Assembly: GCA_904063045.1 (NCBI GenBank)
Contig: CAJFCJ010000015.1
Span: 1,123,034 to 1,187,033, forward strand
Source of the DNA: Dimorphilus gyrociliatus
Taxonomy: Eukaryota > Animalia > Annelida
Length of the DNA stretch: 64,000 nt
Direction: 5' to 3'
Shown: positions 12,741 through 32,576 of the stretch, in pieces
How the letters are laid out: every line of letters starts with the position of its first letter
How positions within the stretch are numbered: position 1 is the first letter of the stretch
Notes under the pieces: model-generated
What the model was told of the DNA's origin: nothing
The model's input: the letters and a program-made list of their open reading frames with translations, nothing else
Databases searched by the model: none
Translations under genes and position numbers: made by a program

Positions 12741-15700
12741 TTACGTCTTAGTACCGCTGCTTATTTCATTATCAAACTTTAAAACTAGATTTTCAGGATT
12801 TTCCGTAATATTTATATAATAACATCCATCTCCAAAGCTACGATTTGAGTTCTCAGAATTGTTTAGACCGTCTTTTCCCGTAGTAATAATACTTTCTGAA
12901 TTTGCCAAAGGTCTAGCTTCATCTTCAGATTTAAGGGTGGTATTTCTCGTCTATTTAGGCGGTCAGAGAAAGAGAGAGAAGAGAAAGCAAATAAAGAAAT
13001 TATATGAATAAGCCTAATAGTAAGAAAGAAATACTAACCCCTCCTATTGATGTAAGCCTTTGAGTTAGATAATCTGTAAAGATCTGTTGATATTTCTCCG
13101 GTAGCCAATGTTGTTGTTTTAACCATCTTAAAGATGCTCTTTGAATGATTAAACTTCTTAGGCAAAGAAACACAAAAACACTTAATCCTTGCAGTGTATT
13201 CAAAATAGTAAATATATACGCCGACCATATATATTTCGTTGATATGTAGAGAAAGCCAAATACCCAAATAAATCCAAAGGTAAATAGCATTTTCAACATA
13301 AATTGGATCATTGAACTGTTTTTTTCATAGTGAAAAGAAAATAAGTGTAAAAATTACAATACGAAATTTATTTATATTTCACTCAACTAGAATTTTTTTC
13401 TTTCCAACTTTTCCGATCCGCTCGAATGTTTATCTCCTTCTACAAGTCTTTGATATTTTATGCAAATTAGTATGGATGATATCATGTTAAGCTGGGTAAA
13501 TGAATGTTCATAAGTTATAATATATATTTCTTTACGTTTTATAATTAACAATACCAATATTACAGCTGAAACTGGAATTATAAAGTAGTAGATAAATTGA
13601 TTGTTTCCAAGCCAACAACTGGAAAAAGTTAACATCATTTAATTTAATGATTAAAATTCATAAAAAAGGTGATGATTTACTAATTTTCAGTTCTTAATTG
13701 AGCAAAATTTCCTCTAACAGCGTCCAAACATATTGCAAATGGAACACCTGAATAAGAGGTTTAAAAAATAAACAATGTATTATAAATAACAGGATACTTA
13801 CCATATCCTGTCAATAAGAATTTCCACTTTATTCCCGACTTGGGATCATATACTAAAACAACCATAATTATTGATAATACACCATATAATCCCATCCACA
13901 CAAAACCACTCAGAAGAAAGAATAGTAAAAATAAACCAATTACTTGACATAAAATCTGATAAAATTCATAAAAATAAATGATTAATTAAAAAACTTTCAA
14001 CGGAAGTAAATGATAAAAACAAACTTTATCTGAAGTCTCAGTTATTCCAGTAAGAAAAATAAACTGTGAAGTCAAAAGGCATATACTCAAATTCACATTT
14101 ATCATAAAACATATTTCATTTGTCACTTTATCACGGAAACTTTCCCTTAAAACAACAAAATCAGTTATAAATTATTTCTGTTGCGTGTTTTAATACTTAC
14201 CGAAATTTTAAAAATATAATTAAAGACATAAAAAGGAAAAACATGGATATTGAACATCCTATACGGGTAATAATCATCAGACTGAGCTTATCAGCATCTG
14301 ATATCTTTCAGCATAAAATTTATGGTAATTGAGTGAAAACAAAGGAAATATGAATAAAACATACCAATTTATCAACTCCATGTATATCCATTAAAATCGC
14401 AAAGTTTGTCAAATGATTACATCTACACTTTACGTGCGTCTTGTTACTTTCCTCTTTCATCATAAAACATCCGTGATTCGACCAAACTCCTTCCTTATTC
14501 TTATCCCTTCAAATTTGAAACAAGTCAAATATCAATAACTTTTCCTTTCATTTTCATCTTCAAATCTCTCCTTCTATTAAAAGATTACAACTAATTTCTC
14601 GAAATCGTTCTACTTACGTTGAAGTTGTATTCCAAAATGAACATTCAGTATTTCCCACTAAGCTTTTCTGTGAATAACGAATGACATCTTTACATTTATT
14701 TATCTATTTATCTATCTATCTATCTGTCTGTCTATCTTCATCTTTTCTCCTAATAACCTTTTACTTACATCTTTCCTTTCGACTATCAAAAATACGTCAC
14801 TCTCCAACGCCGATTGTTTTACTGAGTTTGTCGACAAAATGGCGGCAATTACTTTACTGTTAAACACTCTTTTTCCTTTTCTGCTTTCACTTTCTACCGT
14901 CTTCTTTCCACGAATCGTCAATGTTTCATTCATTTCCCCTCGCCATGTTTCTTCTTCGACGATGCGTTTGTTATTGAGAAGAACATCTTCCATATTCGAA
15001 TATTCGATAAAGATCAGAACGCTTTCATCATTCACAAGACCTAAATTGAAGACATTAAATTGATGGTTTCTTATTGCAACACTTATTTTCAATATGCGTA
15101 GATGTTGTATATATAAAAATGAGTGCGAGTGTGTGTGTCTGTCTGCCTGTCTGTCTGTCAACCTATACTTTTGTCTCTCTCCCTCCGTCTATTGATCCCC
15201 AATCCCCAATCCCCACTTTTATCTCACTAACAAATCTTTTTCACTCTTCACACACTACGTATTCACCTCCAATAGCCTTTCGAGGGATAATAAATTCATT
15301 CCTAGAATTAGTCGAATCCTCTTCACCATCTTCGCTCCGGCCGAAGGCTGATTGTCTTCCAATCGACGATGTAAAGATGAATTCCGTGTTTGACTGTCGA
15401 GTTGAATTATTCAATTTCTGAATACTAACAACTGCGTGGGAAAATAGAAACGATAGTCAATTTTGCGCCACTTATTTTAAATGTTTTCTACAAGAAACCC
15501 AGTTGATTAGAAGTGATAACCGACCTACGTTTTCCTCTTCTATTAATAGAGAATCAGTATTGTTTCTCTGCAAAAAGATACTATCTGATATCTTCATAGT
15601 AGTCTCTTCAATGCTAGTGATCATTCTAAGAGCAGTTTGATGTCGAGTTGTTTGCGAAAGTTCCTCCCAAACGAGAAGTTTATCGGGTTTAAGAAGATTA

Positions 15701-18455
15701 CTAACAGATTGGGTAATAGCCTAAAAGAAACAATTATAAATTATAGACCATAAGTAATGAAAGTAAAGTAGGTGGAAATGATAAACCTTGGTTAAATTAA
15801 GTGCTTGATTATAGGGCATGTTGTGTACGTCATTCGATAGTTGTAGCATTATTTCACCTATCACAGTTATATCTCCGGCATACAGATGTTGAGTTTTTGT
15901 CATTTTCAGAATATTCTGCGAAATATTCTGAAATATTTCAAATTGTCTTTCCGACTTGTTTGTATTTTGTAATTCTTCGTTATTAGAGACTTTTTGAATT
16001 AGGTCGTTAGTGGTGTTTATCTAATTCGTAAAATAGAATGGAACTAATTAATGATTTACGGTAAAGTTATGATATACCCAATTGATGGAAGAGTTAGTGT
16101 AATTCGAAATGCAATTTGAAGAATTATGTCTTAACCATCCACCAATTTTAAAAGAACAGATTCTAGTAGCATCTTAAAAGAAATTTGTTAGTTATTCTCC
16201 TTGAAAGTACTCTTCATTTATTCTTACTCTGATTGTTATATGGGCATGAAGCTGTCACGAGCTTTATCTCTTCTTTAGAGGAAACAGAAGTATTTTTCCA
16301 ATAGATGTGCTCTAATGAATTTTCAAGGCATTGTATGAAAGTTATTGTAGAATCGTTTTTATGTGATTTCGATGGTAGAATTTGTGTTGTACTTTGATCT
16401 TAAAATAAAGAAAGAAGAGTTAAAAGTGAAGTCTTATAAAGAGAAAAATGATATTTAAAAAAAAAAGAAAAACAATTACAAATTTCATCCGCTTCCAATG
16501 ATTTATGGTTGTTATTAATTGCTGTAGATTTGAAGATTCGATTAATTAACTGTGAATCAGTTGTAGCAATTGGATCGTAATTTTCTGTTGTTGTTGCTGC
16601 TGTTAATTGATTATCCAGTAAATGATTCTTTAGAAAACTAGTTGTACGAATAGTGGTGATAGTTGAGTCTGTAAAAATTGTAATTCTTTTTTAACAATTC
16701 TTTATTGAAGTATTGAAAATTTTCTCTAAAAAGTAGTTCGTTGACCTACAGTAAAATTTAATTAAGACTATTTATAATGGTAATTTTTTATATAGCAGCT
16801 TAAAGTGTAAAATCTTTAAATAGTTCTTACTTGTTTCGTTAAATATCTTTGATGAATGTGCTATTGTCGTCTCTCTATTTGATTGATAAGAAGAGGATAT
16901 TTTCTCTGTTGACTGATTAACTAATGAATACGATGTTGTTACTGTTGTTGCTGTTTCTGTCGATGATAATGATGGATAATTAGAGGATGAACGGTAAATA
17001 TCTAATTTCTTTTGTTGAGTTTCAAAGGTTATTTTCTTCGAAGAAGTTGTTAACGATGAATTTGTTTCTTTTACCGGTTTCGACAACAACTTTTCAGGGG
17101 TAGACGTATATTCAAAATCAGTTTTACTCGAAATACTATTTTTACTGTTGGTAGAATTAATTATTGATGTGGTGTGTTCAATCCATTCGGTTAATTTTAA
17201 AGTAGATATACATTTAAATTCAATCAGCATCTTAAATGGCTCATTATACAAATTTAAACCATTAATTGGTACTTGACAATCGTGCTTATTGCGACAACTG
17301 AAATAAATATATAAACATAGTTTATAGCCTATAAACTAATTAAAATAATAATAAAAAGTATCAACCAACCGCTCAATTATTTTTAATTTAGAACGACTAT
17401 AAGTTCCCCAAAGTAAATATGAGGCCATTTGGATATCAGTCCAGATATTATTCACCATTAAAGTAGACCTTTCCGTGTCACAATTTAAATGAATGAATGA
17501 AGAATCGTTGTTATAGTATGGTTGAATATTCAAATGTTCTTTTGTTATACAATCGTATTCGAAGGTAAAATTAGCTACTAATTCGCAAAAAGATTGTTTT
17601 TTGAAAAGGAAATCCAAATTGCAAGTTTCTCTGAAGTTACATCTATAATAAAGTGATTCATCATATCATTAGATAGATATTAAATAGTATAGTATCATTT
17701 TTTTTTACTTAAACATTATACTCTCTTCCAAAACATATCTACAGGAACAATAGTCGTCAATGCAAGTAAGATTTATAGGTAGATGATTGCTATGAATAAG
17801 ACTTCCCAATGGACATTTTATATTAGTTTTATTAATGTTGTCTATAAAAATTTGATAAGATGTCTTTATCAAGTTTGTCTTCTTTGAATCGTTGCCAATA
17901 ATCATTTCCTTATCTGTATAATTATATAAAAATTACTTAAAATAGCTTGATAATAAATCTATTAATATTAATAAATTCAATTAAAATTGACCTACTCAAG
18001 TCGTAGTTGTAATGATTACAAATATAGTTAACTTGAACCGATTCTTGACATTCTAAACGATCAAGATGATAAATAGTACAATTCTTTAAATAATTACACC
18101 TGAAAAAAGTTGATTCATTCATTCATTATTTTACATAGTTTAACTTATAAAACAAAAATTTTACCTCTGTTTGAAAATGAAATTAATTGATTCAAAACAA
18201 GTGAAAGAATCCGAATTGTTAGTTGCATTAAAATCAATTAAAATAAAACTATCGTCTGAACATTCAATATCTATCTTTGACATTCCATTTTCATATTCTA
18301 CGAATAAGGTTTCTGCGTAACAATTGAACCTGTTTAGTTAAATGATGAATCGTTTCTTTTAATAAAATTTTTATTTGTATAAATATGAAATAGTACCATA
18401 ATAGACATAAAATATTGATTATTAAATCTTTATTTGTTCTATTATTACGCATCAT
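12741..18455 (-). CDS. Adhesion GPCR A (latrophilin-like): signal peptide, 3 degenerate SUEL/RBL lectin-like domains, S/T stalk, HRM, GAIN/GPS, 7TM
   Basis: Hand-spliced with no frameshift or stop. GPS is [27 protein letters not shown] is [24 protein letters not shown], and TM7 has [16 protein letters not shown]. Confidence 0.88.
14368..15773 (-). repeat. Left copy of a 1,406-bp inverted repeat (partner 21127-22532)
   Basis: Line-by-line comparison gives position + partner position = 36900 throughout, so there are no indels. One mismatch found (15575 vs 21325). Confidence 0.95.
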
Positions 18456-19240
18456 AATAGCCTTTAAAAAGGAAGTATAATATAATTTATACAAAATGAG
18501 TATAAAGAAACTTCTCAATGTTCTAATTTTTTGATTTCTTCAAATGTACGTTAAAGTTCGAATGACATAGTTTTAACTTTCCAACTCTTGCTTCCACAAC
18601 CCTGGACGGTTACTTTCTATATTATTTCTCCAAAAACACTTTTTTATGTACAATATATTGAATAATTGCCTTGATTTTTACAGGTCTATACAGTTTGAAA
18701 TAAACAAATATATACAGTAAACACTTTCTAACATACTAATATATACAAAATACGACAAACTATAATTATTATATTTTGGACATTATGCAAAAATTATAGG
18801 CAATTACATGTATTTATGATTACCTATATTCTATATCTAATAATACTCAATATATTAATAATTATGGATGTTTTACGTCACATATAATTTTTGCTCTCTT
18901 TTGTTAACTATTAATTAAGTTAATATAAGTTTCGTTGAGTACAATGCTACCAGTATCGTTTGAAAGAAAACAAAAAACATCAACCGGAAAGTAAAAAATA
19001 ACGAAAGTCTAAACAAAATAAAAAAAAAACAAAAGAAGGTATAATATCAAAATGCTACATTGAATATGTTTTTCTTTTATATAGTATTGAAATTGCTCAA
19101 AATACATCTATAAACTAATATATTTATTTATATATTTCTCTTATTTTTTGACCTCGCTGACTAAGAATCTAATATATAAACTATTATCAACAGAACATTC
19201 TTTCGATCCATTCGTTTGATAATTTTTCATAAATAAAACT

Positions 19241-22200
19241 ATGAGGATTAATGTTCAATTTTTCATTATTTTCTATATTCAATTAAAGAGGTAAATATAA
19301 AAACTAAGTAAAAATTTTAATATCTTTTTGTTTTGTTTTTGTTGTTTTTTTTAAAAAAAATAGTTTGATAGGAAAAAATGAAAGAAAAATTGACAATAGA
19401 GGAAATTCGTTTGAATTGAATTGCTATTCGAATTTTATGATTCAAATTGAAGAAGGTCCAGTTTATCCGATTGAAAGTCAATGCGACCTTCATTATAATT
19501 ACGTAAAAGAGTATTTTGCCTTAAGGTATAATGTCTTTATAAATATACTCTTTTGTTGTTAAAGATATACTAATATTTATGTATAAAACTGTAATTTTCA
19601 GATGTAATTTTAAAGAAAAGTGCTCCATAAAAAGGAAATCCGTTCATTTTATTAAGAATTGCACGCGATTCAATGGAAATATTGTGTATACGTGCATTAA
19701 AAAGGTTATGGTGGCTATATATCCAATAATGAATACTGCATATTTATTAGGATGTCCAAACCATACAACTTTAAAGATTAATTACCTTTGGATAAGCTTT
19801 TATAAATATTTCGTGAAAACTTTACTTAATCAAATTTCTAAAGAACTCCTTGAAAATGTTAAAAATTCCATCAAAAATATTGAAAAGCTGTTAATTGAAC
19901 AGTAAAAACAATTCTTAATATTAAAATAATCAAATAATTTCTACTTATATATTCATATATATTCATTTTTAGATGTAATGGAAAGACAATATGCAAATTT
20001 AAAGATTTAAAACTTATAAGAAGATGTCCTATTATTAAAATTCTTCACGAATGCATTCCTTCTACATCTGGTAATGATTCGATATGAATATAATTTAATT
20101 TTATCATACGCTTCTCTATTTATATAAACATATATGGAAGAAACTACAATTGTGAATAATCAAGCAACATTATCAACGATAAATGGCGAGCAGACGTCTT
20201 ACAGTACGTCCCATGGAATTTATACATCCACTACCGAACGAACGGTTAATAGTGAATTTTCAACAACCGATAACGAAGAAGGGACCACAGCTTCGGTAAC
20301 CTATTCAACGAAACATCAGCAATCCTCTCCAATTGGCAAAATTTCAACTACCTATTCTCAAAAAAGCCAACTTTTAAACAAAGAAGAAGAAGAGAAGAGA
20401 ATCACTAATATGCCAAGTAAGGCAATAGGAACTTTCCAAACAACTACTGAAGATTCGAATAAAACTATGCATAATAGTAAGGAAAAGTTTCGAATTTATT
20501 CAATATCTATAATTTAGCTACATTACTAATTAGTTCCCTCACTTAATTAGGCTCTCGTTTCACTGCTAAAGAAAGCACAATGGCATGGATTAACACAGAT
20601 AAGCCAATTCTAGAAATTAAATGCTTGGAAGAATATTCTGGTATATTTCATTGGAAGCAGACAAATGTAACAAATTTCGAGGAAGAAGTTCTTGTTAGCA
20701 GTTTATGTCCTGATGGAGAAAATAGTAAAGCTCAAACACTATTTTACATATTCCGTTAAGCCTATCGTATTATTATAACAATTACAGATGCTACCAGAAT
20801 ATGTTCGTACAACAATCAAGGTTGGTTAAGAATGAACACTTCTAATTGCCAATCGAGCGAAATGTTGGAAATAGATCAAGAGGTGGTACTACTGATATTT
20901 TGAAGAAAACGTTCAATTTAATAATTATTATATTAATGTTTTCGTAGCCGAAATCTCAGGAAAATTTAACAAATACAGCAAATAAAATATCCAAACTGAC
21001 ACAAACAGGTCGTCTATATGCTGGGGATATTAGTCTAACTGGAAAAATCCTTCAAGTATTATCTAAGAATATAGAAAATGTTACGTTTACGCAGGCAGAG
21101 AATATAACCAAGGTAATATCATTTCTACCTACTTTACTTTCATTACTTATGGTCTATAATTTATAATTGTTTCTTTTAGGCTATTACCCAATCTGTTAGT
21201 AATCTTCTTAAACCCGATAAACTTCTCGTTTGGGAGGAACTTTCGCAAACAACTCGACATCAAACTGCTCTTAGAATGATCACTAGCATTGAAGAGACTA
21301 CTATGAAGATATCAGATAGTATCTCTTTGCAGAGAAACAATACTGATTCTCTATTAATAGAAGAGGAAAACGTAGGTCGGTTATCACTTCTAATCAACTG
21401 GGTTTCTTGTAGAAAACATTTAAAATAAGTGGCGCAAAATTGACTATCGTTTCTATTTTCCCACGCAGTTGTTAGTATTCAGAAATTGAATAATTCAACT
21501 CGACAGTCAAACACGGAATTCATCTTTACATCGTCGATTGGAAGACAATCAGCCTTCGGCCGGAGCGAAGATGGTGAAGAGGATTCGACTAATTCTAGGA
21601 ATGAATTTATTATCCCTCGAAAGGCTATTGGAGGTGAATACGTAGTGTGTGAAGAGTGAAAAAGATTTGTTAGTGAGATAAAAGTGGGGATTGGGGATTG
21701 GGGATCAATAGACGGAGGGAGAGAGACAAAAGTATAGGTTGACAGACAGACAGGCAGACAGACACACACACTCGCACTCATTTTTATATATACAACATCT
21801 ACGCATATTGAAAATAAGTGTTGCAATAAGAAACCATCAATTTAATGTCTTCAATTTAGGTCTTGTGAATGATGAAAGCGTTCTGATCTTTATCGAATAT
21901 TCGAATATGGAAGATGTTCTTCTCAATAACAAACGCATCGTCGAAGAAGAAACATGGCGAGGGGAAATGAATGAAACATTGACGATTCGTGGAAAGAAGA
22001 CGGTAGAAAGTGAAAGCAGAAAAGGAAAAAGAGTGTTTAACAGTAAAGTAATTGCCGCCATTTTGTCGACAAACTCAGTAAAACAATCGGCGTTGGAGAG
22101 TGACGTATTTTTGATAGTCGAAAGGAAAGATGTAAGTAAAAGGTTATTAGGAGAAAAGATGAAGATAGACAGACAGATAGATAGATAGATAAATAGATAA

Positions 22201-24241
22201 ATAAATGTAAAGATGTCATTCGTTATTCACAGAAAAGCTTAGTGGGAAATACTGAATGTTCATTTTGGAATACAACTTCAACGTAAGTAGAACGATTTCG
22301 AGAAATTAGTTGTAATCTTTTAATAGAAGGAGAGATTTGAAGATGAAAATGAAAGGAAAAGTTATTGATATTTGACTTGTTTCAAATTTGAAGGGATAAG
22401 AATAAGGAAGGAGTTTGGTCGAATCACGGATGTTTTATGATGAAAGAGGAAAGTAACAAGACGCACGTAAAGTGTAGATGTAATCATTTGACAAACTTTG
22501 CGATTTTAATGGATATACATGGAGTTGATAAAAGTGTCAGTATAATTGTATCAACTTACAATTATAGATTAACTTGACAAATAATTATTTTTGTTTGTTT
22601 TTCTTATGTCTGCAGTTATCGGAAATTGATCGATTTGCTTTAATGATAATTACTAGATGCGGATGTTGTGTATCAATTTTTTTTTTAATGATAACAATTA
22701 TTATTTTCGCAAAGTTCCGGTAAGTTTCTCCTTGGTGCCTATTTTGAATGGTTAATTGTTATATATAAATATAACAGGAGAAAATTTTATGGTAAGGTGA
22801 CGAAGGAAGCGACTTTTTTGATTAACATAAATTTGAGTATATCATTATTATTGGCGCAAGTGATCTTTTCTATAGGAATACCGCAAACATCAAATAAGGT
22901 ATATCTTTAATTTAAATTAATTAAACTTAGTGTTTCTTACTATGTCTATTTATAGAGTTTTAGCAAATTTGTATGATGTACAGTAGATGTAGTAGCTATT
23001 TACGATTTCTTTTGCTTGTTTGTCTTCTTTTAGATCATCTGCCATGTCGTCACAACAGTTTTATTGTACTTTCTATTAGCTTGTTTCATGTGGATGGGTT
23101 TATACGGTATTTTATCACTAATTATGGTTATATTCGTATACGAACCAAAATCATCTTTAAGATGGAAATTTCTATCAGTTGGATATGGTAATGAATTAAT
23201 ATTTATAGAAAATTGTTTTATTAAATTGATAAATCAGTTAATTAATTAGATATTGTTTTTATTATTTTGTAAGGTATACCAATACTAATTTCAATTGATG
23301 TCGTAAAGGATTTCTTTCTAGAATTAAAGGAGAAGACTTAGTAAGTTAGATAAAATTGGAATATTTGCTATTTTTAGTTGTTTAATACTTTTGTCATTTT
23401 TTAATTAAACTAATAAAGTTGTTGGATTGACAAGAAACATTTTATCTATTGTTTCATTTTACCCCTATGTTTGGTAATATTCGTAAGTATTGAAATAAAT
23501 ACTTTTAAAGTGTTTTTTTTAACACAAATCTACGTATTTTCTAGATTAATTTAATAGCATCAATTGTAATTTGCATCAAATATCGACGTTCAACGGCCAA
23601 TCGTAATAATTTAAAGAAGATATCACATGTTAAAAAATCGGAAAAGGCTAAATTTTTGTACGAAATAGTTGTCTTTTTTTTTTATAAATGAAAGAGTATG
23701 GAAAATTTTGTAACTGTTTACTTTTGTTCTTCCAACTTAGATCTATGGTGCAGTTTATGCTAAAAATGCTATTTACCTTTGGATTCGTATGGGTTTTTGG
23801 CTTTTTATATATTTCGACACAATTTGTATGGGCAGCATATATATTTTGTATATTAAATTCCTTACAAGGGCTAAGCGTATTTATATTCATCTGTGCACGG
23901 AGTGAAATAATAAGGGACGCATCGAGAAGATGGCTCAGAAAACAGGGCTGGGTACCTCAAACATTACAAGATAAAATATTAACGAGTTATTCAACATCGA
24001 AAGTATCACAGGTAATAGTATTATATCGATTAATTAGTATTATTACTTGAAAAAAAAATGTTCTAATTAGACGCCAACAATTGAGAAATATCCACCGGAA
24101 GATGAAAATTTATCAACCTGCCAAAAAAATTCAAGTAAATCCATTTTATGGCCGCATTTAGCAAGTTCAGAAGAATTGAATACATTTGTGAAATCCAAGA
24201 AAATGAATTCAAAACAGGAATATATAAAAAATATTTATTGA
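19241..24241 (+). CDS. Adhesion GPCR B: signal peptide, 2 degenerate SUEL-like domains, S/T stalk, HRM, GAIN/GPS, 7TM
   Basis: Starts [16 protein letters not shown]. Lectin-like RCNFKEKC and [52 protein letters not shown]. All TM exons splice in frame to TGA at 24239-24241. Confidence 0.88.
21127..22532 (+). repeat. Right copy of the 1,406-bp inverted repeat (partner 14368-15773)
   Basis: Reverse-complement identity includes introns and microsatellite lengths. ORFs 21479-21826 and 21739-22188 translate identically to 15074-15421 and 14712-15161. Confidence 0.95.
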
Positions 24242-24776: not shown

Positions 24777-27700
24777 TCATTTTCTTCGTACCTCTCCAGT
24801 TCTTTCATCTTTTTGCAATATTATCGGCATTTGAGATGTGTTAATAATTTCGTATGCATTTGTAAATCTCTCTAAATATATATCATTTGGATTTAAATAG
24901 ATTGAAGTTTCATTTTCTCTTTCTCTTCTAATTGGTTCGTTATTTTCAATTGTTTCCGATCTATTCAGTTTGTCATTTTTCGATTTATCACCCGCATTGA
25001 AAAGTTCCTTTATTTTTATAGTAGAATAATAAAAAGACTATGTTAATTTGTAGTAAATAGATGAAAGAGCTATTTACCCCTGATGATGACGAATCTATTA
25101 AGTAATTAGTTAGTTTGTCTTTAAAAGTTAAGGATAACCAAGTTCTTTTTCGTAGCCACGTTAAAACTGAACGTTGAATAATAACGCTCTTAATACATAA
25201 GAAATAAAAGATGCTTAGGCCTTGTAAACTATTTAAAATGGTGAAAATATAAGCGGCCCATACGAATTTTTTCGAAATGTATAAAAATCCAAAAGTCCAA
25301 CTAAGACCAAATACGAAAAGCGTTTTCAAAGTAAATCTTAAAACAGAACTGTAAACAAATATCAATTAATTAGTTAATTAGCTAATATCCAATCAGCTTA
25401 CTAGTATTTTTTAAGCTCTAATTTTTGGTTTTTAAGACAATGTTTCCGATTATGAGAAAGACGCCATTGTTTAATAGAAACAATACATGTTACTATTAAA
25501 TTTATCTAAAAGGAGATGGGAAATAGAAAATTAACTTAAGTTAATTAAAATTATTAGAAATAATAGTTTATTTACTAAAATCACAACGGCAAGTGGACAA
25601 ATAAAATTCCAAATAAATAGTTCTTTCCTCAACCAACAGCTAAGAAATTAATAGAATATTTATCGTACGTCTATGTTTCGACTGTATACTTACAAATTTC
25701 TGGAGCTTAACCCCTGGAAATTTAGCCCTACCGTAATACCAACGATAATCCCTGGTAAGGCTTTAAAAATACAAAATATAATGTTATTTATTAAATAAAC
25801 TCTTAGAACGTATGTGAATAGAATATATAGATATTTTATCTTTAGTATATTCCCTTACCGTATGCAATTATAAGGAATTTCCTACGTAAAGATGTCCTAA
25901 CCTCAAAGATTACAACTACTAGGAAAAAAGTTAAGACTCCTTGCAATCCCATCCACATAAAACTTGAGAGAAGACAATACAATAGCAAGCCCCCAATCAA
26001 TCGACAAATCAACTTTCATTATAAAATTAATTATGTCAATAATAACAAACTTATGAATATTAATAACTTACTTGATTTGAAGTTTGTGTTATACCAAATA
26101 GAAATATTAATTGAGATACTAGTAATGTTAAACTCAAATGAATATTTATGAGATTTGACATTGCAGAGCTTCTTTTGGCGTTAAAATTTTTTCTATATGA
26201 ATGGAAATAATTAATATTATGCATTAATTAACATAAACTGACCTAAATTTTATAAACGGAAATAAAGATAATACAAGGAAGAAAACTGAGACAGAACATC
26301 CAACACGACTTATAATAGAAAGGCTAAATCGATGTTCTAGAGAAAGCTAGTTAAGGAAGAAAGAGATTAATCATTCTTTTTATATGGAGAATATATTTCA
26401 TTCTTTTCTTTACAGTATCTTCAACTCCGTGCATATCAAATAGAACAGCAAAATTAGTTAAATGGTTGCATTTGCATTTCGTATGAGTAATGTTACTCTC
26501 CTCTCTGACGAAAGAACATCCTGACTGTGACCAAGACCCGACATTTTCCCTTTAAACGAGAATTATTTAATTAAAAATGGAATTTATTGATAATTTTATT
26601 AATTAACCTTGACCCTAAATTCCAGTACGAGCATAATGTCTTACCATTCAAGTTTTTCTATTCAAAGCAATATACATTATTAACATATAATAATAATAAA
26701 AATTTATACAAAACCTTCCTATTTTCAGTTATAAAGAAAATATCACCCGAAACTTTCAACTGCTTGAAATTTGAACCGTCAATAGCCGTAGCACTAATGA
26801 CTCTGCTATTTAAAACTGTATTATTATTTTTTAAAGTCGTCTCTAACATCTCTTCAATATTTGAATATTCAACGAAAATTAAAACAACTCTTTTACTTTT
26901 AGTTTCTAAAGTAATAAAAATTTGAATATTCATTAAAAAATTATTTTATGAATATTTATGAATATTAATTAATACTTATTGAATTTTTTGGAATAATAAA
27001 TTCATTTGTATATCCTTTTCTTCTATGTTTACGGATGTAATTTGGTGAAAATTTATACTTTTCAACAGTAGAATCATTTTTTTGATTAATCTCTTCGGCG
27101 CTTATAACTATAATTATAAACGAACTCTATATATATATTGTTTGTAAATTTAAGCCTATATAAACAAACCTAAATTATCAGCAATAACTAAAAGATTCGT
27201 TTGATTCAACGATTTACTCTTAATCATATTTAATGCAGTACTTTCGGCAATTTGCACTAAACTTTCAACGATTCTCATTCTTCGAGAGTTATACACTTCT
27301 CTCCACTTTTTAACCTTTTCCCCACTTAACAGATTATTAATCGACTTTATTATATCCTTTGTTTTTTTAGAAAAACAAAAATCTATTTAACCAATTCTCT
27401 AGCATTTTTAACAACTTACTCTAGAAATATTATAAACTGAATTCTGAATGGGAATAGTAGTATCAATCTTTTTCGATATTAGATATAAAATCTCTTCAAA
27501 TGCTTCGATATTTCCAGAATATTCTAAATTATTCATTGTTTCTTCAGCTAACCTTCTAGCAATATTGTAATTTGTTACTTTGTTCTGTTTCAGCTGTAGA
27601 AAAATATTTCTAAAATTTAGTAAAAAATTTAAATAATAGCTTATGAATATTCAAAAGAGAAAAGATGCCTTACATCTATTAATATTTTCCCAATAAAATC

Positions 27701-30700
27701 TGACTTACAACTGGTAGTATTAGGTCGCTTCCAGCCTTTATCAAAAGTACACAATCTTGTAGCCTCTGAACGAATAAAAAGATATTAACCTTACAGTTAA
27801 ATTTAAATTAATTACTACTTTCGTTATCTGGACATTGTATTGTTACTTCTTTTTGTGTCTCTTTAGGTGATACATAGACAGTTTTCCAAACCAGACCATC
27901 TATAACTTCCCTTGGACATTTTGTTATTGATATTTTAGTAGTCGATACAATAGTTGACTCCTCAAGTATAAAAGTTTTATCCATTCGTTGATTTATTCCA
28001 TTCGTTGATGTAGGGAATATCTGTGTAAATGATTTCGATTGTTCTAATTGTATCTTTTTAGAGGACTCCTCTTTTATATTCTCCTTTGCTGTTGGCCAAT
28101 TTGTTTCAGCTGACCTTGTCGAGGGTTTATCTGTTATGAAATTTAAGGAGTGATCTTGATTTTTCTCCATTGTCGATAAAACTATTGGCGAAATTAAGTT
28201 ATTGCTAGTTAATTTCGGCAAAGGAGTTGATCCAGCTGAAGAATAGTCATCAGGCAACTTCGTTGAAATAACTTCCCTTCCTATTCTAGAAACTGGTTGT
28301 GATATTTTTTCGACACTATACGCTGTCGTTGTAGTAACCTTTATATTTTTTGTTGCTTTCTTAACTTGCGTAGCTAGAGATTCAAATGAATTATTCTGAT
28401 CTTCATAAGTAGCTTTCGAGATGCCAGCTTGAGTAAAATCTCTTAATTTGGGCTTAATATTAGTCCTATCACGCCAAGCTACATCTGTTACTGCTATCTT
28501 AGCTTTATCACTGGTTGTTGAAACGATATTTATTTTAGGATAGCTTGTCTGTACGGATCTGGGGATAGATACTTTTCCAACAACATCTTTTAATATCGTC
28601 ATCAGTCTTCTTTCAGTTGTTGAAATGCTAATCATTTGAGAGTGGTTACTCTCCTGAGAACGAGGTGTAGCTTTCTTTACAGTTTTATCTATTACCAGAG
28701 TTTTGGATTTAATTCCATTCGTTGTAAATATCTCTGCGTAGTTAGGTGTAGATATTTTCCTAACAACATCAGCTGACAAAGTGTGTGGTATCCTTTGCGT
28801 TAATGAAAAAGCACTTGTTCTAGGAATGCTATTTTCAACAGAGGAAGGATTGATAAACTTTCCACTGTCTTCAACTGAAGCACTCGTTGGTCTTTCCTCA
28901 ACTGATGTAAAGACATTGGTTACTGGATTGTTGGCTCTGACAGAAGAAGGTTCATATAACCTTCCATTGTCTTCCACTGAAGCACTCGTTGGTCTTTCCT
29001 CAACTGATGTAAAGACGTTGGTTACTGGATTGTTGGCTCCGACAGAAGAAGGTTCATATAACCTTCCATTGTCTTCCACTGAAGCACTCGTTGGTCTTTC
29101 CTCAACTGATGTAAAGACGTTGGTTACTGGATTGTTGGCTCCGACAGAAGAAGGTTCATATAACCTTCCATTGTCTTCCACTGAAGCACTAGTTGGTCTT
29201 TCCTCAACTGATGTAAAGACGTTGGTTACTGGATTGTTGGCTCCGACAGAAGAAGGTTCATATAACCTTCCATTGTCTTCCACTGAAGCACTAGTTGGTC
29301 TTTCCTCAACTGATGTAAAGACGTTGGTTACTGGATTGTTGGCTCCGACAGAAGAAGGTTCATATAACCTTCCATTGTCTTCCACTGAAGCACTAGTTGG
29401 TCTTTCCTCAACTGATGTAAAGACATTGGTTACTGGATTGTTGGCTCCGACAGAAGAAGGTTCATATAACCTTCCATTGTCTTCCACTGAAGCACTCGTT
29501 GGTCTTTCCCCTACTGATGTAAAGACATTGGTTACTGGATTGTTGGCTCCGACAGAAGAAGGTTCATATAACCTTCCACTGTCTTCCACTGAAGCACTCG
29601 TTGGTCTTTCCTCAACTGATGTAAAGACGTTGGTTACTGGATTGTTGGCTCCGACAGAAGAAGGTTCATATAACCTTCCATTGTCTTCCACTGAAGCACT
29701 AGTTGGTCTTTCCTCAACTGATGTAAAGACGTTGGTTACTGGATTGTTGGCTCCGACAGAAGAAGGTTCATGTAACTTTCCACTATCTTCAATTGAGGCA
29801 GTCGTTGGTCTTTCCTCAACTGATGTAAAGATGTTAGTTACTGGATTGTTGGCTCCGACAGAAGAAGGTTCATATAACCTTCCATTGTCTTCCACTGAAG
29901 CACTCGTTGGTCTTTCCTCAACTGATGTAAAGACGTTGGTTACTGGATTGTTGGCTCCGACAGAAGAAGGTTCATATAACCTTCCATTGTCTTCCACTGA
30001 AGCACTCGTTGGTCTTTCCTCAACTGATGTAAAGACGTTGGTTACTGGATTGTTGGCTCCGACAGAAGAAGGTTCATATAACCTTCCATTGTCTTCCACT
30101 GAAGCACTCGTTGGTCTTTCCTCAACTGATGTAAAGACGTTGGTTACTGGATTGTTGGCTCCGACAGAAGAAGGTTCATATAACCTTCCATTGTCTTCCA
30201 CTGAAGCACTAGTTGGTCTTTCCTCAACTGATGTAAAGACATTGGTTACTGGATTGTTGGCTCCGACAGAAGAAGGTTCATATAACCTTCCATTGTCTTC
30301 CACTGAAGCACTCGTTGGTCTTTCCCCTACTGATGTAAAGACATTGGTTACTGGATTGTTGGCTCCGACAGAAGAAGGTTCATATAACCTTCCACTGTCT
30401 TCCACTGAAGCACTCGTTGGTCTTTCCCCTACTGGTGTAAAGACGTTGGTTACATGATTGTTGGCTCTGACAGAAGAAGGTTTGATTAACCTTCCACTAT
30501 CTTCAACTGAGGTAGTCGATCTTTCTTGAACTAATGTAAAAGCTTTTATTATTACATTATTGATTTTAACAGAAGAGAGACATTTAGATTACTTACCTCT
30601 GTCTTTATCTAATATAACTTTTGGCCTTTTTCGCACAGAAGAATACGTGTCTGTTGCAGGGTCTTTTCTTTCTGCAGAATTTGGTGTTTGCAGTTTTTCT

Positions 30701-32576
30701 TCTTCTATTATGACAACTTTTGATCTAGAATCAGTTGTTGAAAAGGCACTTGTTGTTGAACTGTGTTCACTTGTAGATACAGCTGTATCTTTTTTTCTAG
30801 TTTTATGTACGTCAATAGGTTTGGCCGTAGTCTCAGTTGTTGTAATAATGTTGTTTGCTAATGTGTTTTGTTGAGATACATCTGTAATTGATGAAGGTTC
30901 GGTTGAAAATCCTGCTTTTATATGTGTTTTTCCTGCTTTTGACAAATATACTTCCATTTCTGGAGGAGTGAGGATAGTCAACGCATTAGCAACTTCATTT
31001 GGTATAAAAGAACTCCTACTTGATTCAGAGTTGTGAATAGGCTGAGTTCTCCTATTGAGATGATCAGTTTCCTTTTTCTTGTATATAGTGTTAGTGTTCA
31101 GAGATAATATTTTATCAAGGGTTGGTTGGATAGTTGCAATATTCTCTTCGCTTATCGCTTGTATCGAACTCAGCTTCTCTTTTGTCGATCCCCGAACATT
31201 GTTTAAAATTTCCGTTATGATATTTTTAGAAGACACTTCGGTATTTAATTCATTCTTATATGTTGTAAATTTTGGACTGTGGAATTTTGTCTGCAAAGAA
31301 TTAGTCGTAATTGTAACCGGTTGTATACTAGTTTTTTTTAATTCCTGTCTTATTGATGATTGTCGTACATTATCGGTACTAGTTGTTTTAATAACATGTT
31401 TAGTAGATAATTTAATTAAACTTTGAGACTTTGAACTGGTCTGCTTAAGTGCATTTTTAGGTGTGATAAACGAAGTTTTCATCTCTCCATCATTTTTATT
31501 CAAATCTTGTGTTATTTCTTTAGAAGGCTTAGTTGATAAGTCTGGTTTATCTGTCAAAAGTGAATTTGATTGCATACTCTCATTATTTTCGTCAATTGCC
31601 TTCAATTGAGGGTTTGTCGTAGTAAATTTAATAAAATTTTGTGCTGTAGTGGTTTTAAGAGTAGTAGTACCCGATAATTTAGCAGTCGTTTCTGTAGTAT
31701 AAGCAATGATATTATAGGATAATTAATAAAGGAGAATAGAGAACCATTCGATATACATTCATGGGAGACCTTTGATATATAACAACCGCTCATATAAACT
31801 GGATATCTATTCGTAAAAAGTATTCGTAGATCAACAGTACATTTCGTCTTCTTGTCACACCTATAATAAACTGTTCTGTAGACATTTTAATAAACAAACT
31901 GTTAAAGTAAACATACTCTTTAAGTACTTTAATTTTAATAAAAAATCTGCAATCAATATCGCATCTCTCTATATGTCCAACCCTAGATTCGTCCCAAACG
32001 TACTCATCGGAACATATTTGAAAGTCAGTCCAAACGTCATTAATTCGTATCAATTTATTATTTTCACAGTTCAAGTTAAAAGAATAATCAGTAGGGAGAA
32101 TTAAACTTTTTGAAGGGTGTTTTGTTGAGCATTCAAAATCAACTTCAAACGAATGAAGGCTATAAAGAAAGCAAGGATATTTTCGATAAAAGGTATCGCT
32201 TGTATCACATTCTCTTTCAAAGTTACATCTATATATAAATGAATTAAATAATTAATATATAACTTTTACACGTTCATTTTAAATCGATAAACCTGAATAA
32301 AATACTTTGAAATGTTACATTATCAGCTAATAGCATTTCATGATAACAGTCACTCCTCCTTGGTTCTTCCGTAAAAGGCGTACTTACAATATTAATAACG
32401 GAACCCTTAGGGCATTCTAATATAGGATCATCGATTGATAGCGTTTTAGTTATTATTTTCCCATAAGATCTATAAAAAAAAAGTTAAATAATAATTAAAC
32501 ATCAATTAAAAAATTGTAATAATTACTCAACAAATTCTGTATTATAAAATAAAAAGAGAAGACAAACTATCCTCAT
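24777..32576 (-). CDS. Adhesion GPCR C, roughly 2,200 aa: signal peptide, 2 degenerate SUEL-like domains, very long mucin-like stalk with 34-aa repeats, HRM, GAIN/GPS, 7TM
   Basis: Starts [12 protein letters not shown]. Lectin-like [78 protein letters not shown]. The exons splice in frame to TGA at 24777. Confidence 0.88.
28876..30507 (-). repeat. Coding tandem repeat, 16 full units of 102 bp (34 aa: [34 protein letters not shown]), plus degenerate flanks
   Basis: The 102-bp period was read directly (e.g. TACTGGAT at 28921 and 29023). Units were counted in ORF 27808-30405 plus one upstream unit. Confidence 0.97.

Follow-up and report, generated by a model that had tools for sequence, protein, structure and literature searches.

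Organization of the locus

A 64,000-nt window of the genome of the annelid Dimorphilus gyrociliatus (contig CAJFCJ010000015.1, positions 1,123,034 to 1,187,033) carries three adhesion G protein-coupled receptor (GPCR) paralogues side by side, here called A (minus strand), B (plus strand) and C (minus strand); A and B lie head to head, and C is tail to tail with B. The window genes match the database proteins DgyrCDS10453 (A) and DgyrCDS10454 (B) letter for letter or nearly so. Our subject is a pair of inverted repeat arms, one inside A and one inside B, that carry GAIN/GPS exons of both genes, together with the interval that the arms enclose, which an earlier note on this DNA had put forward as a cassette whose inversion would exchange the ectodomains of the two receptors. 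The genes, arms and interval are as follows.

12744..18703, minus strand: gene A (DgyrCDS10453, extended), 23 exons, ATG at 18455, open reading frame (ORF) of 1,295 aa, modelled from RNA joints and contigs and GT-AG introns; domain order: three SUEL-lectin-like Cys repeats, Ser/Thr-rich stalk, HRM-like, GAIN/GPS, seven-transmembrane region (7TM), tail
19241..24047, plus strand: gene B (DgyrCDS10454, public model partial), modelled from protein mapping, Pfam, a structure-atlas match and ORF segments; domain order: two SUEL-lectin-like repeats, Ser/Thr stalk, HRM-like, GAIN/GPS, 7TM
14368..15773, minus strand: left arm core (gene A), comprising most of the intron 8-equivalent and five GAIN/GPS exons with introns
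21127..22532, plus strand: right arm core (gene B), reverse complement of the left arm, placed by the alignment and the exon map of DgyrCDS10454
15774..21126, 5,353 nt: interval between the cores, with the N-terminal exons of A (minus) and B (plus) and the gap between the transcript starts
18704..19240: gap from the 5′ end of the A RNA contig to the first coding exon of B, candidate divergent promoter region

A repeat search placed the arms at 14353-15783 and 21117-22547 (1,431 nt, 99% complementary) and blastn at 14368-15798 versus 22532-21101 (99.65%), and base-by-base alignment resolved a core of 1,406 nt (14368-15773 versus 22532-21127) with one mismatch, an A at 15575 and a G at 21325, which turns a Phe codon in one arm into a Ser codon in the other or the reverse. 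On its inner side the core is bordered by a 25-nt frayed zone with 4 differences, spanning a conserved exon end and donor site, and past both edges of the tract mismatch reaches ~50% within a few bases. The arms occupy equivalent positions in the two genes: one end lies in intron 8 (B numbering), 13 nt from its start, and the other is 3 nt short of the end of the exon that encodes the GPS and the Stachel (tethered-agonist) sequence. The tract thus corresponds approximately to intron 8 through exon 13 and includes ~278 GAIN-domain codons, roughly residues 651-928 of gene A, and five introns. Near-identical inverted repeats at the same position in each gene, as the earlier note had described them, are confirmed both by the alignment and by the agreement of the exon maps. 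Both tract edges fall 3-13 nt from a 5′ splice site (14368; 15773-15798; and the mirror positions). A transposable-element origin of the arms was considered and ruled out: what they contain are spliced GAIN/GPS exons with homologues in gene C.

The introns of the arm (14506-15785) are longer than most others, at 66-226 nt versus 54-88 nt. Tetranucleotide microsatellites, identical between the two arms, are present in arm introns at 14690-14742 and 15118-15165.

The interval between the cores contains exons 1-10 of A (ATG at 18455, with the transcript contig reaching 18703) and exons 1-8 of B (exon 1 at 19241-19288). That it carries both N-terminal coding regions within exactly the coordinates first proposed is upheld by the exon maps and by a single DNA contig described below. 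RNA depth is zero at 18800-18999 in the depth table of the RNA runs, and a short divergent promoter in the A/B gap is plausible on this pattern.

Two arm copies in read-derived contigs

Read evidence was taken from Logan short-read contigs over 13400-19399, in one DNA run (X1) and three RNA runs (X2-X4), the latter recognised as RNA from their splice joints, which have GT..AG ends on the minus strand. The RNA runs represent two studies, X2 coming from a different and earlier one (2017). In X1, exactly one contig, 1,406 nt in length and at a depth of 705, covers 14368-15773. A flank contig at depth 230 ends 30 nt inside the arm, a second flank contig at depth 153 overlaps those 30 nt, and exactly one 5,413-nt contig at depth 179 corresponds to 15744-21156, with both of its ends on the left arm, once per strand. 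This graph is as expected of two true arm copies. Loose ends at 14546 and 15739 are single contigs, and all bins across 14600-15599 stand at exactly 705, the depth of the arm contig alone. In X2-X4, one 830-nt contig spans the arm exons, and A- and B-specific contigs branch from it at both edges, as in the DNA.

The depth of the arm, 3-4.6 times that of the flanks, is explained by GC bias in the library. Across the single-copy X1 contigs (n = 3), depth increases from 153 to 230 as GC content increases from 0.265 to 0.304, a trend that predicts ~323 per copy at the arm GC content of 0.351, and after this correction the arm depth of 705 represents two copies. A third arm copy, which the uncorrected excess had led us to suspect, was ruled out on the same grounds. 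Strong GC bias is also mentioned in the D. gyrociliatus genome paper (PMC7854359); the genome is 74 Mb in size.

Gene models and receptor family

Genes A and B are both intact and expressed. The gene A model was assembled from RNA joints and canonical splice sites, all introns being GT-AG; one intron of 81 nt (16399-16479) was placed on the evidence of depth bins and because an in-frame stop would otherwise remain. The ORF in this RNA-guided model is intact over 1,295 aa and 23 exons. The public protein DgyrCDS10453 starts at Met 15903 and is N-terminally truncated, since RNA contigs show the upstream exons of A (18703 down to 15787) spliced onto the first arm exon; ~630 residues are missing, comprising the lectin-like repeats, the Ser/Thr stalk and the HRM-like domain. 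DgyrCDS10454 is 3′-partial, with ...IKYRRSTA as its last residues. An ORF encoding transmembrane helices 6-7 (TM6-7), located at ~23733-24008 on the plus strand (within 23545-24047) and 66% identical to that of A, lies 3′ of the end of the public model, and the genome therefore probably holds gene B in full. The present models correct two public ones that were incomplete.

In Pfam scans, residues 400-740 of the gene B protein matched GAIN (3.1e-23) and GPS (9.4e-15), the GPS exon alone matched GPS (2.9e-14), and a single exon matched 7tm_2 (7.9e-9); PF00002 is precomputed for both public proteins, and a GPS motif with an HL|T cleavage site can be read directly in the sequence. An HRM domain preceding GAIN was detected below threshold (E = 0.0081, 17 bits versus a cut-off of 26.2). 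No olfactomedin domain was matched in the Pfam scans or the precomputed domains. The earlier note had counted three lectin domains in A and two in B. These counts match the Cys-pattern repeats, but the identity of the repeats as SUEL lectins is weak: the Pfam score for SUEL_Lectin was below the cut-off (E = 0.32), exon pieces gave no SUEL_Lectin match in Pfam, and in a structure-atlas comparison the N-terminal Cys-pattern repeats resembled a two-domain rhamnose-binding lectin with a feature score of 0.89 and a TM of 0.51. An AlphaFold prediction of the B N-terminus from a single sequence without an alignment had a predicted local distance difference test (pLDDT) value of 38 and was unusable.

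Judged by this predicted domain content, A and B are latrophilin-like adhesion GPCR (family B2) paralogues. The likeness to latrophilins (ADGRL) lies in the combination of putative N-terminal SUEL/rhamnose-binding-lectin-like domain(s), a putative HRM-like domain, GAIN with the GPS and its cleavage motif, and a secretin-type 7TM. Unlike in vertebrate latrophilins, no olfactomedin domain is detected here; the genes also depart from latrophilins in that the lectin-like units occur in several copies (three in A, two in B and at least two in C) and are too degenerate for Pfam, and in that a Ser/Thr-rich stalk has been inserted.

Divergence and base composition

Outside the arms, A and B share 41-67% protein identity, and only two exon stretches, both of them 7TM exons, can be aligned as DNA, at 72-76% (13145-13317 versus 23739-23911, and 13770-13930 versus 23059-23218), a level that marks the background divergence of the pair. 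On these comparisons, and given how little of the DNA outside the arms can still be aligned, the duplication is old, and the identity of the arms is recent. The third gene was used as an outgroup:

24991..32483 (approximate), minus strand: gene C, third and more distant paralogue, outside the repeat

Gene C is more distant from A and B than A is from B, and an A/B/C identity comparison found A and B to be mutual closest relatives in every segment, N-terminal and 7TM alike. The segment tree is silent on past flips, because a swap between A and B cannot alter their closeness to each other. No orthologous locus or other strain was found in databases, the nearest database proteins being at most 35% identical.

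The only relative is a 1.3-kb metagenome scaffold (ENA ERZ23500112, 1-1283) that contains part of exon 8 and arm exons 9-11 in the same order; at ~75-77% nucleotide and 50% protein identity it represents a distant relative, and it is too short to show the neighbouring sequences. The stalk of gene C includes a 102-nt tandem repeat of ~17 units, 90-96% alike (28838-30605, minus strand), each encoding 34 Ser/Thr/Pro-rich aa within one 926-codon open stretch, which gives a long mucin-like stalk.

The arms differ from their surroundings in base composition. Their GC content is 0.35, versus 0.27 for the adjoining 7TM regions and 0.26 for the homologous GAIN region of gene C, and the same holds for introns considered separately, with a GC content of 0.32 in the arm and 0.22 in the remaining introns of the two genes (p = 4e-8 by chi-square, 4e-7 once microsatellites are masked, bases being treated as independent). 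GC enrichment of arms maintained by conversion has been documented in primate X palindromes (PMC8981503), and the enrichment found here is suggestive of GC-biased gene conversion.

Orientation of the interval

The geometry on which the flip-flop proposal was built holds. Wherever in the arms a crossover fell, 15774-21126 would be inverted and the promoter and ectodomain of each gene joined to the 7TM half of the other. Since the exchange would take place inside identical sequence, at equivalent exon positions in intact genes, the resulting chimeras would be in frame and retain their splice sites, also as proposed. Short-read graphs, of DNA and RNA alike, merge the two arms into one and carry no information on orientation, and no contig spans an arm. 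The RNA depths on either side of the arms are listed below; contig mean depth is a poor measure of expression, the B values were derived indirectly from bins, which are reproduced exactly by multiplying exon length by contig depth (ten bins checked), and the length of the B N-terminal overlap is uncertain.

A 7TM, contig depth: X2 195, X3 104, X4 66
B 7TM, derived from bins: X2 79, X3 25, X4 15
A N-terminal, contig depth: X2 136, X3 30, X4 45
B N-terminal, derived from bins: X2 ~56-90, X3 ~10-17, X4 ~10-17

In each of the three runs, depth is greater for A than for B, on the N-terminal and the 7TM side alike. This fits the pairing in the reference, as a predominantly inverted pairing would reverse the order on one side, and the RNA contig depths weakly favour the reference orientation as the main form, with which a minor inverted fraction would be compatible. 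The depth of the arm in RNA approximates the sum of A N-terminal and A 7TM depths, and this was considered as a sign of flipping. It was not counted as such: 3′ coverage bias together with expression of B gives the same sum, and the bin-derived B depths contradict an inverted pairing.

Within gene A, the N-terminal RNA contig is 1.4-3.5 times shallower than the 7TM contig (30 versus 104 in X3), a gap that could reflect 3′ coverage bias or N-truncated transcripts from an internal start.

Discussion

We propose that the arms are kept near-identical by recurrent interlocus gene conversion, from arm to arm, between two old head-to-head paralogues, and we regard this as the likely explanation of the locus. 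What favours conversion is that the identity extends over introns and microsatellites as well as exons, and then ends at sharp edges. In the history that we envisage, an old head-to-head duplication would have been followed by arm-to-arm conversion operating continuously ever since, such that the GAIN/GPS segment was homogenised while the rest of both genes, ectodomain and 7TM exons as well as the remaining introns, diverged freely. Continuous homogenisation fits better than a late onset because homologous conversion could hardly begin afresh between flanks that have diverged so far, and we infer that repeated conversion, not a single event, lies behind the identity of the arms. The locus would then be a palindrome in miniature, its arms 1.4 kb and its spacer 5.3 kb long, in which occasional resolution by crossover might invert the spacer as a by-product rather than as a programmed switch.

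Several observations weigh against this explanation or limit how far it can be taken. The Illumina library behind X1 also served to polish the assembly, and X1 is therefore not fully independent of it, while RNA run X2 comes from another study. The p-values for intron GC content take bases to be independent, and the GC excess could in part reflect the base composition of the region. From the locus of this one species, neither how many conversions took place nor in which direction they ran can be reconstructed. The position of the edges is also unusual: both lie 3-13 nt from a 5′ splice site, as would be expected in ~2% of cases if conversion ended at random (a rough estimate), which hints at selection on the edges or at copying by template switching at short conserved motifs (microhomology).

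An alternative that makes direct use of these edges is that the segment was copied once, and recently, by a long conversion or by a template switch during replication, without long-term concerted evolution. The last homogenisation must indeed have been recent, with one mismatch in the 1,406-nt core, and the conserved 5′ splice-site sequences that adjoin the edges are possible microhomology for such a switch. Against it, the flanks are too diverged for ordinary homologous invasion to start, and the GC excess of arm introns and exons over the flanks and gene C would be unexpected unless the donor was already GC-rich; on balance, we find a single event very unlikely. An error of assembly or polishing, in which the GAIN regions are not truly identical or one arm was wrongly pasted, deserves mention because the assembly used PBcR self-corrected PacBio reads, Quiver and Pilon (PMC7854359), a procedure able to homogenise close repeats. 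It is at odds with the DNA contigs, in which one arm contig at two-copy depth is accompanied by two distinct outer flank contigs and one spacer contig touching the arm twice, and with the RNA of the 2017 study, in which one arm contig is joined to both A- and B-specific 7TM exons; nor do the read-derived contigs include a diverged alternative GAIN contig at ≥90% likeness. Taken together, the DNA graph and the RNA branching, the latter including a separate earlier study, make an artefact of this kind extremely improbable.

The remaining alternative is a working flip-flop, in which the spacer inverts to an appreciable extent, as a germ-line polymorphism or somatically, and the pair encodes four receptors. 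The substrate for it is present, in the form of 1.4-kb inverted arms that are 99.9% identical, 5.3 kb apart and at equivalent exon positions in two intact expressed genes, and the conversion tract makes recombination between the arms evident. Precedents exist in primate X palindromes, where spacer inversions are frequent (PMC8327919), and in the human CTRB1-CTRB2 inversion, which exchanges promoter and exon 1 between opposite paralogues (PMC6145291). On the other side, databases hold only the two reference-type proteins and no chimera, RNA depths of A and B follow the order that the reference pairing predicts in three runs, and the arms resemble a long-maintained, GC-enriched conversion tract with sharp edges rather than a dedicated switch. 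None of the listed ORFs close to the locus stood out as recombinase-like, the window not having been systematically scanned for one, and no regulatory feature is indicated. We consider an appreciable flip-flop unlikely; the proposal seems sound as a possibility and unsupported as fact. The wider conjecture, that the 5.3-kb spacer toggles in populations or tissues, coupling each promoter and lectin ectodomain to either 7TM half, and that such conversion-maintained mini-palindromes could be a recurrent route for re-pairing the sensing and signalling modules of receptors, we hold to be unlikely as well.

Recurrent conversion and spacer inversion differ in what the locus would teach. If it is a conversion tract only, it offers a clean, small case of domain-restricted concerted evolution, in which GAIN, GPS and tethered agonist are held identical as the ligand-binding and signalling halves of the receptors diverge. 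If the spacer inverts, the locus would show that, in an animal, whole ectodomains together with their promoters can be joined to other 7TM halves through a single recombination event.

Relation to known systems

Homologous recombination between inverted repeats is known to invert the interval between them, as in the F8 intron-22 inversion and in plastid flip-flop. The F8 inversion destroys a gene and plastid flip-flop isomerises the genome with no gene changed; neither re-pairs the halves of paralogues. In the bacterial shufflon-type and hsdS systems, inverted repeats in opposed paralogous genes allow domain swapping by inversion. Those systems usually need a dedicated site-specific recombinase and have short repeats and high-frequency switching, none of which is indicated at the D. 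gyrociliatus locus.

The arms share features with those of sex-chromosome palindromes and the FLNA-EMD repeats, which are likewise inverted and more than 99% identical through arm-to-arm, GC-biased conversion, and in which inversion of the spacer is a common by-product of crossover (PMC8327919, PMC8981503). About half of the spacers of primate X palindromes differ in orientation between species (PMC8327919). The arms of sex-chromosome palindromes and FLNA-EMD repeats range from 10 kb to more than 1 Mb and contain whole genes (PMC8327919, PMC8981503), whereas the 1.4-kb arms described here are an internal segment of two old and diverged genes, so that a flip would make chimeric genes.

The earlier note knew of no description of such an inversion for adhesion GPCRs, and a full-text literature search found none for this family; the mechanism, in contrast, has a human precedent. 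CTRB1-CTRB2 is the site of a 16.6-kb inversion polymorphism (Pang et al., cited in PMC6145291). According to that source, the breakpoints lie in an identical block, the promoter and the 5′ coding part are exchanged with the frame kept, and the isoform expression ratio is reversed. The two loci are alike in having oppositely transcribed paralogues with a shared near-identical block, where inversion swaps, or here would swap, promoter and 5′ part. They differ in that, for CTRB1-CTRB2, both orientations are reported from people and the exchanged coding part is the signal peptide only (PMC6145291), whereas in D. gyrociliatus the reference orientation alone has been observed and the part exchanged would be a 650-aa ligand-binding ectodomain together with the start of GAIN. 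Should the spacer flip, what CTRB1-CTRB2 shows for a signal peptide would be extended to a functional module of a receptor. Among known systems, the locus is best classed as an inverted tract, maintained by gene conversion, between adhesion GPCR paralogues, for which the proposed inversion has a known human analogue.

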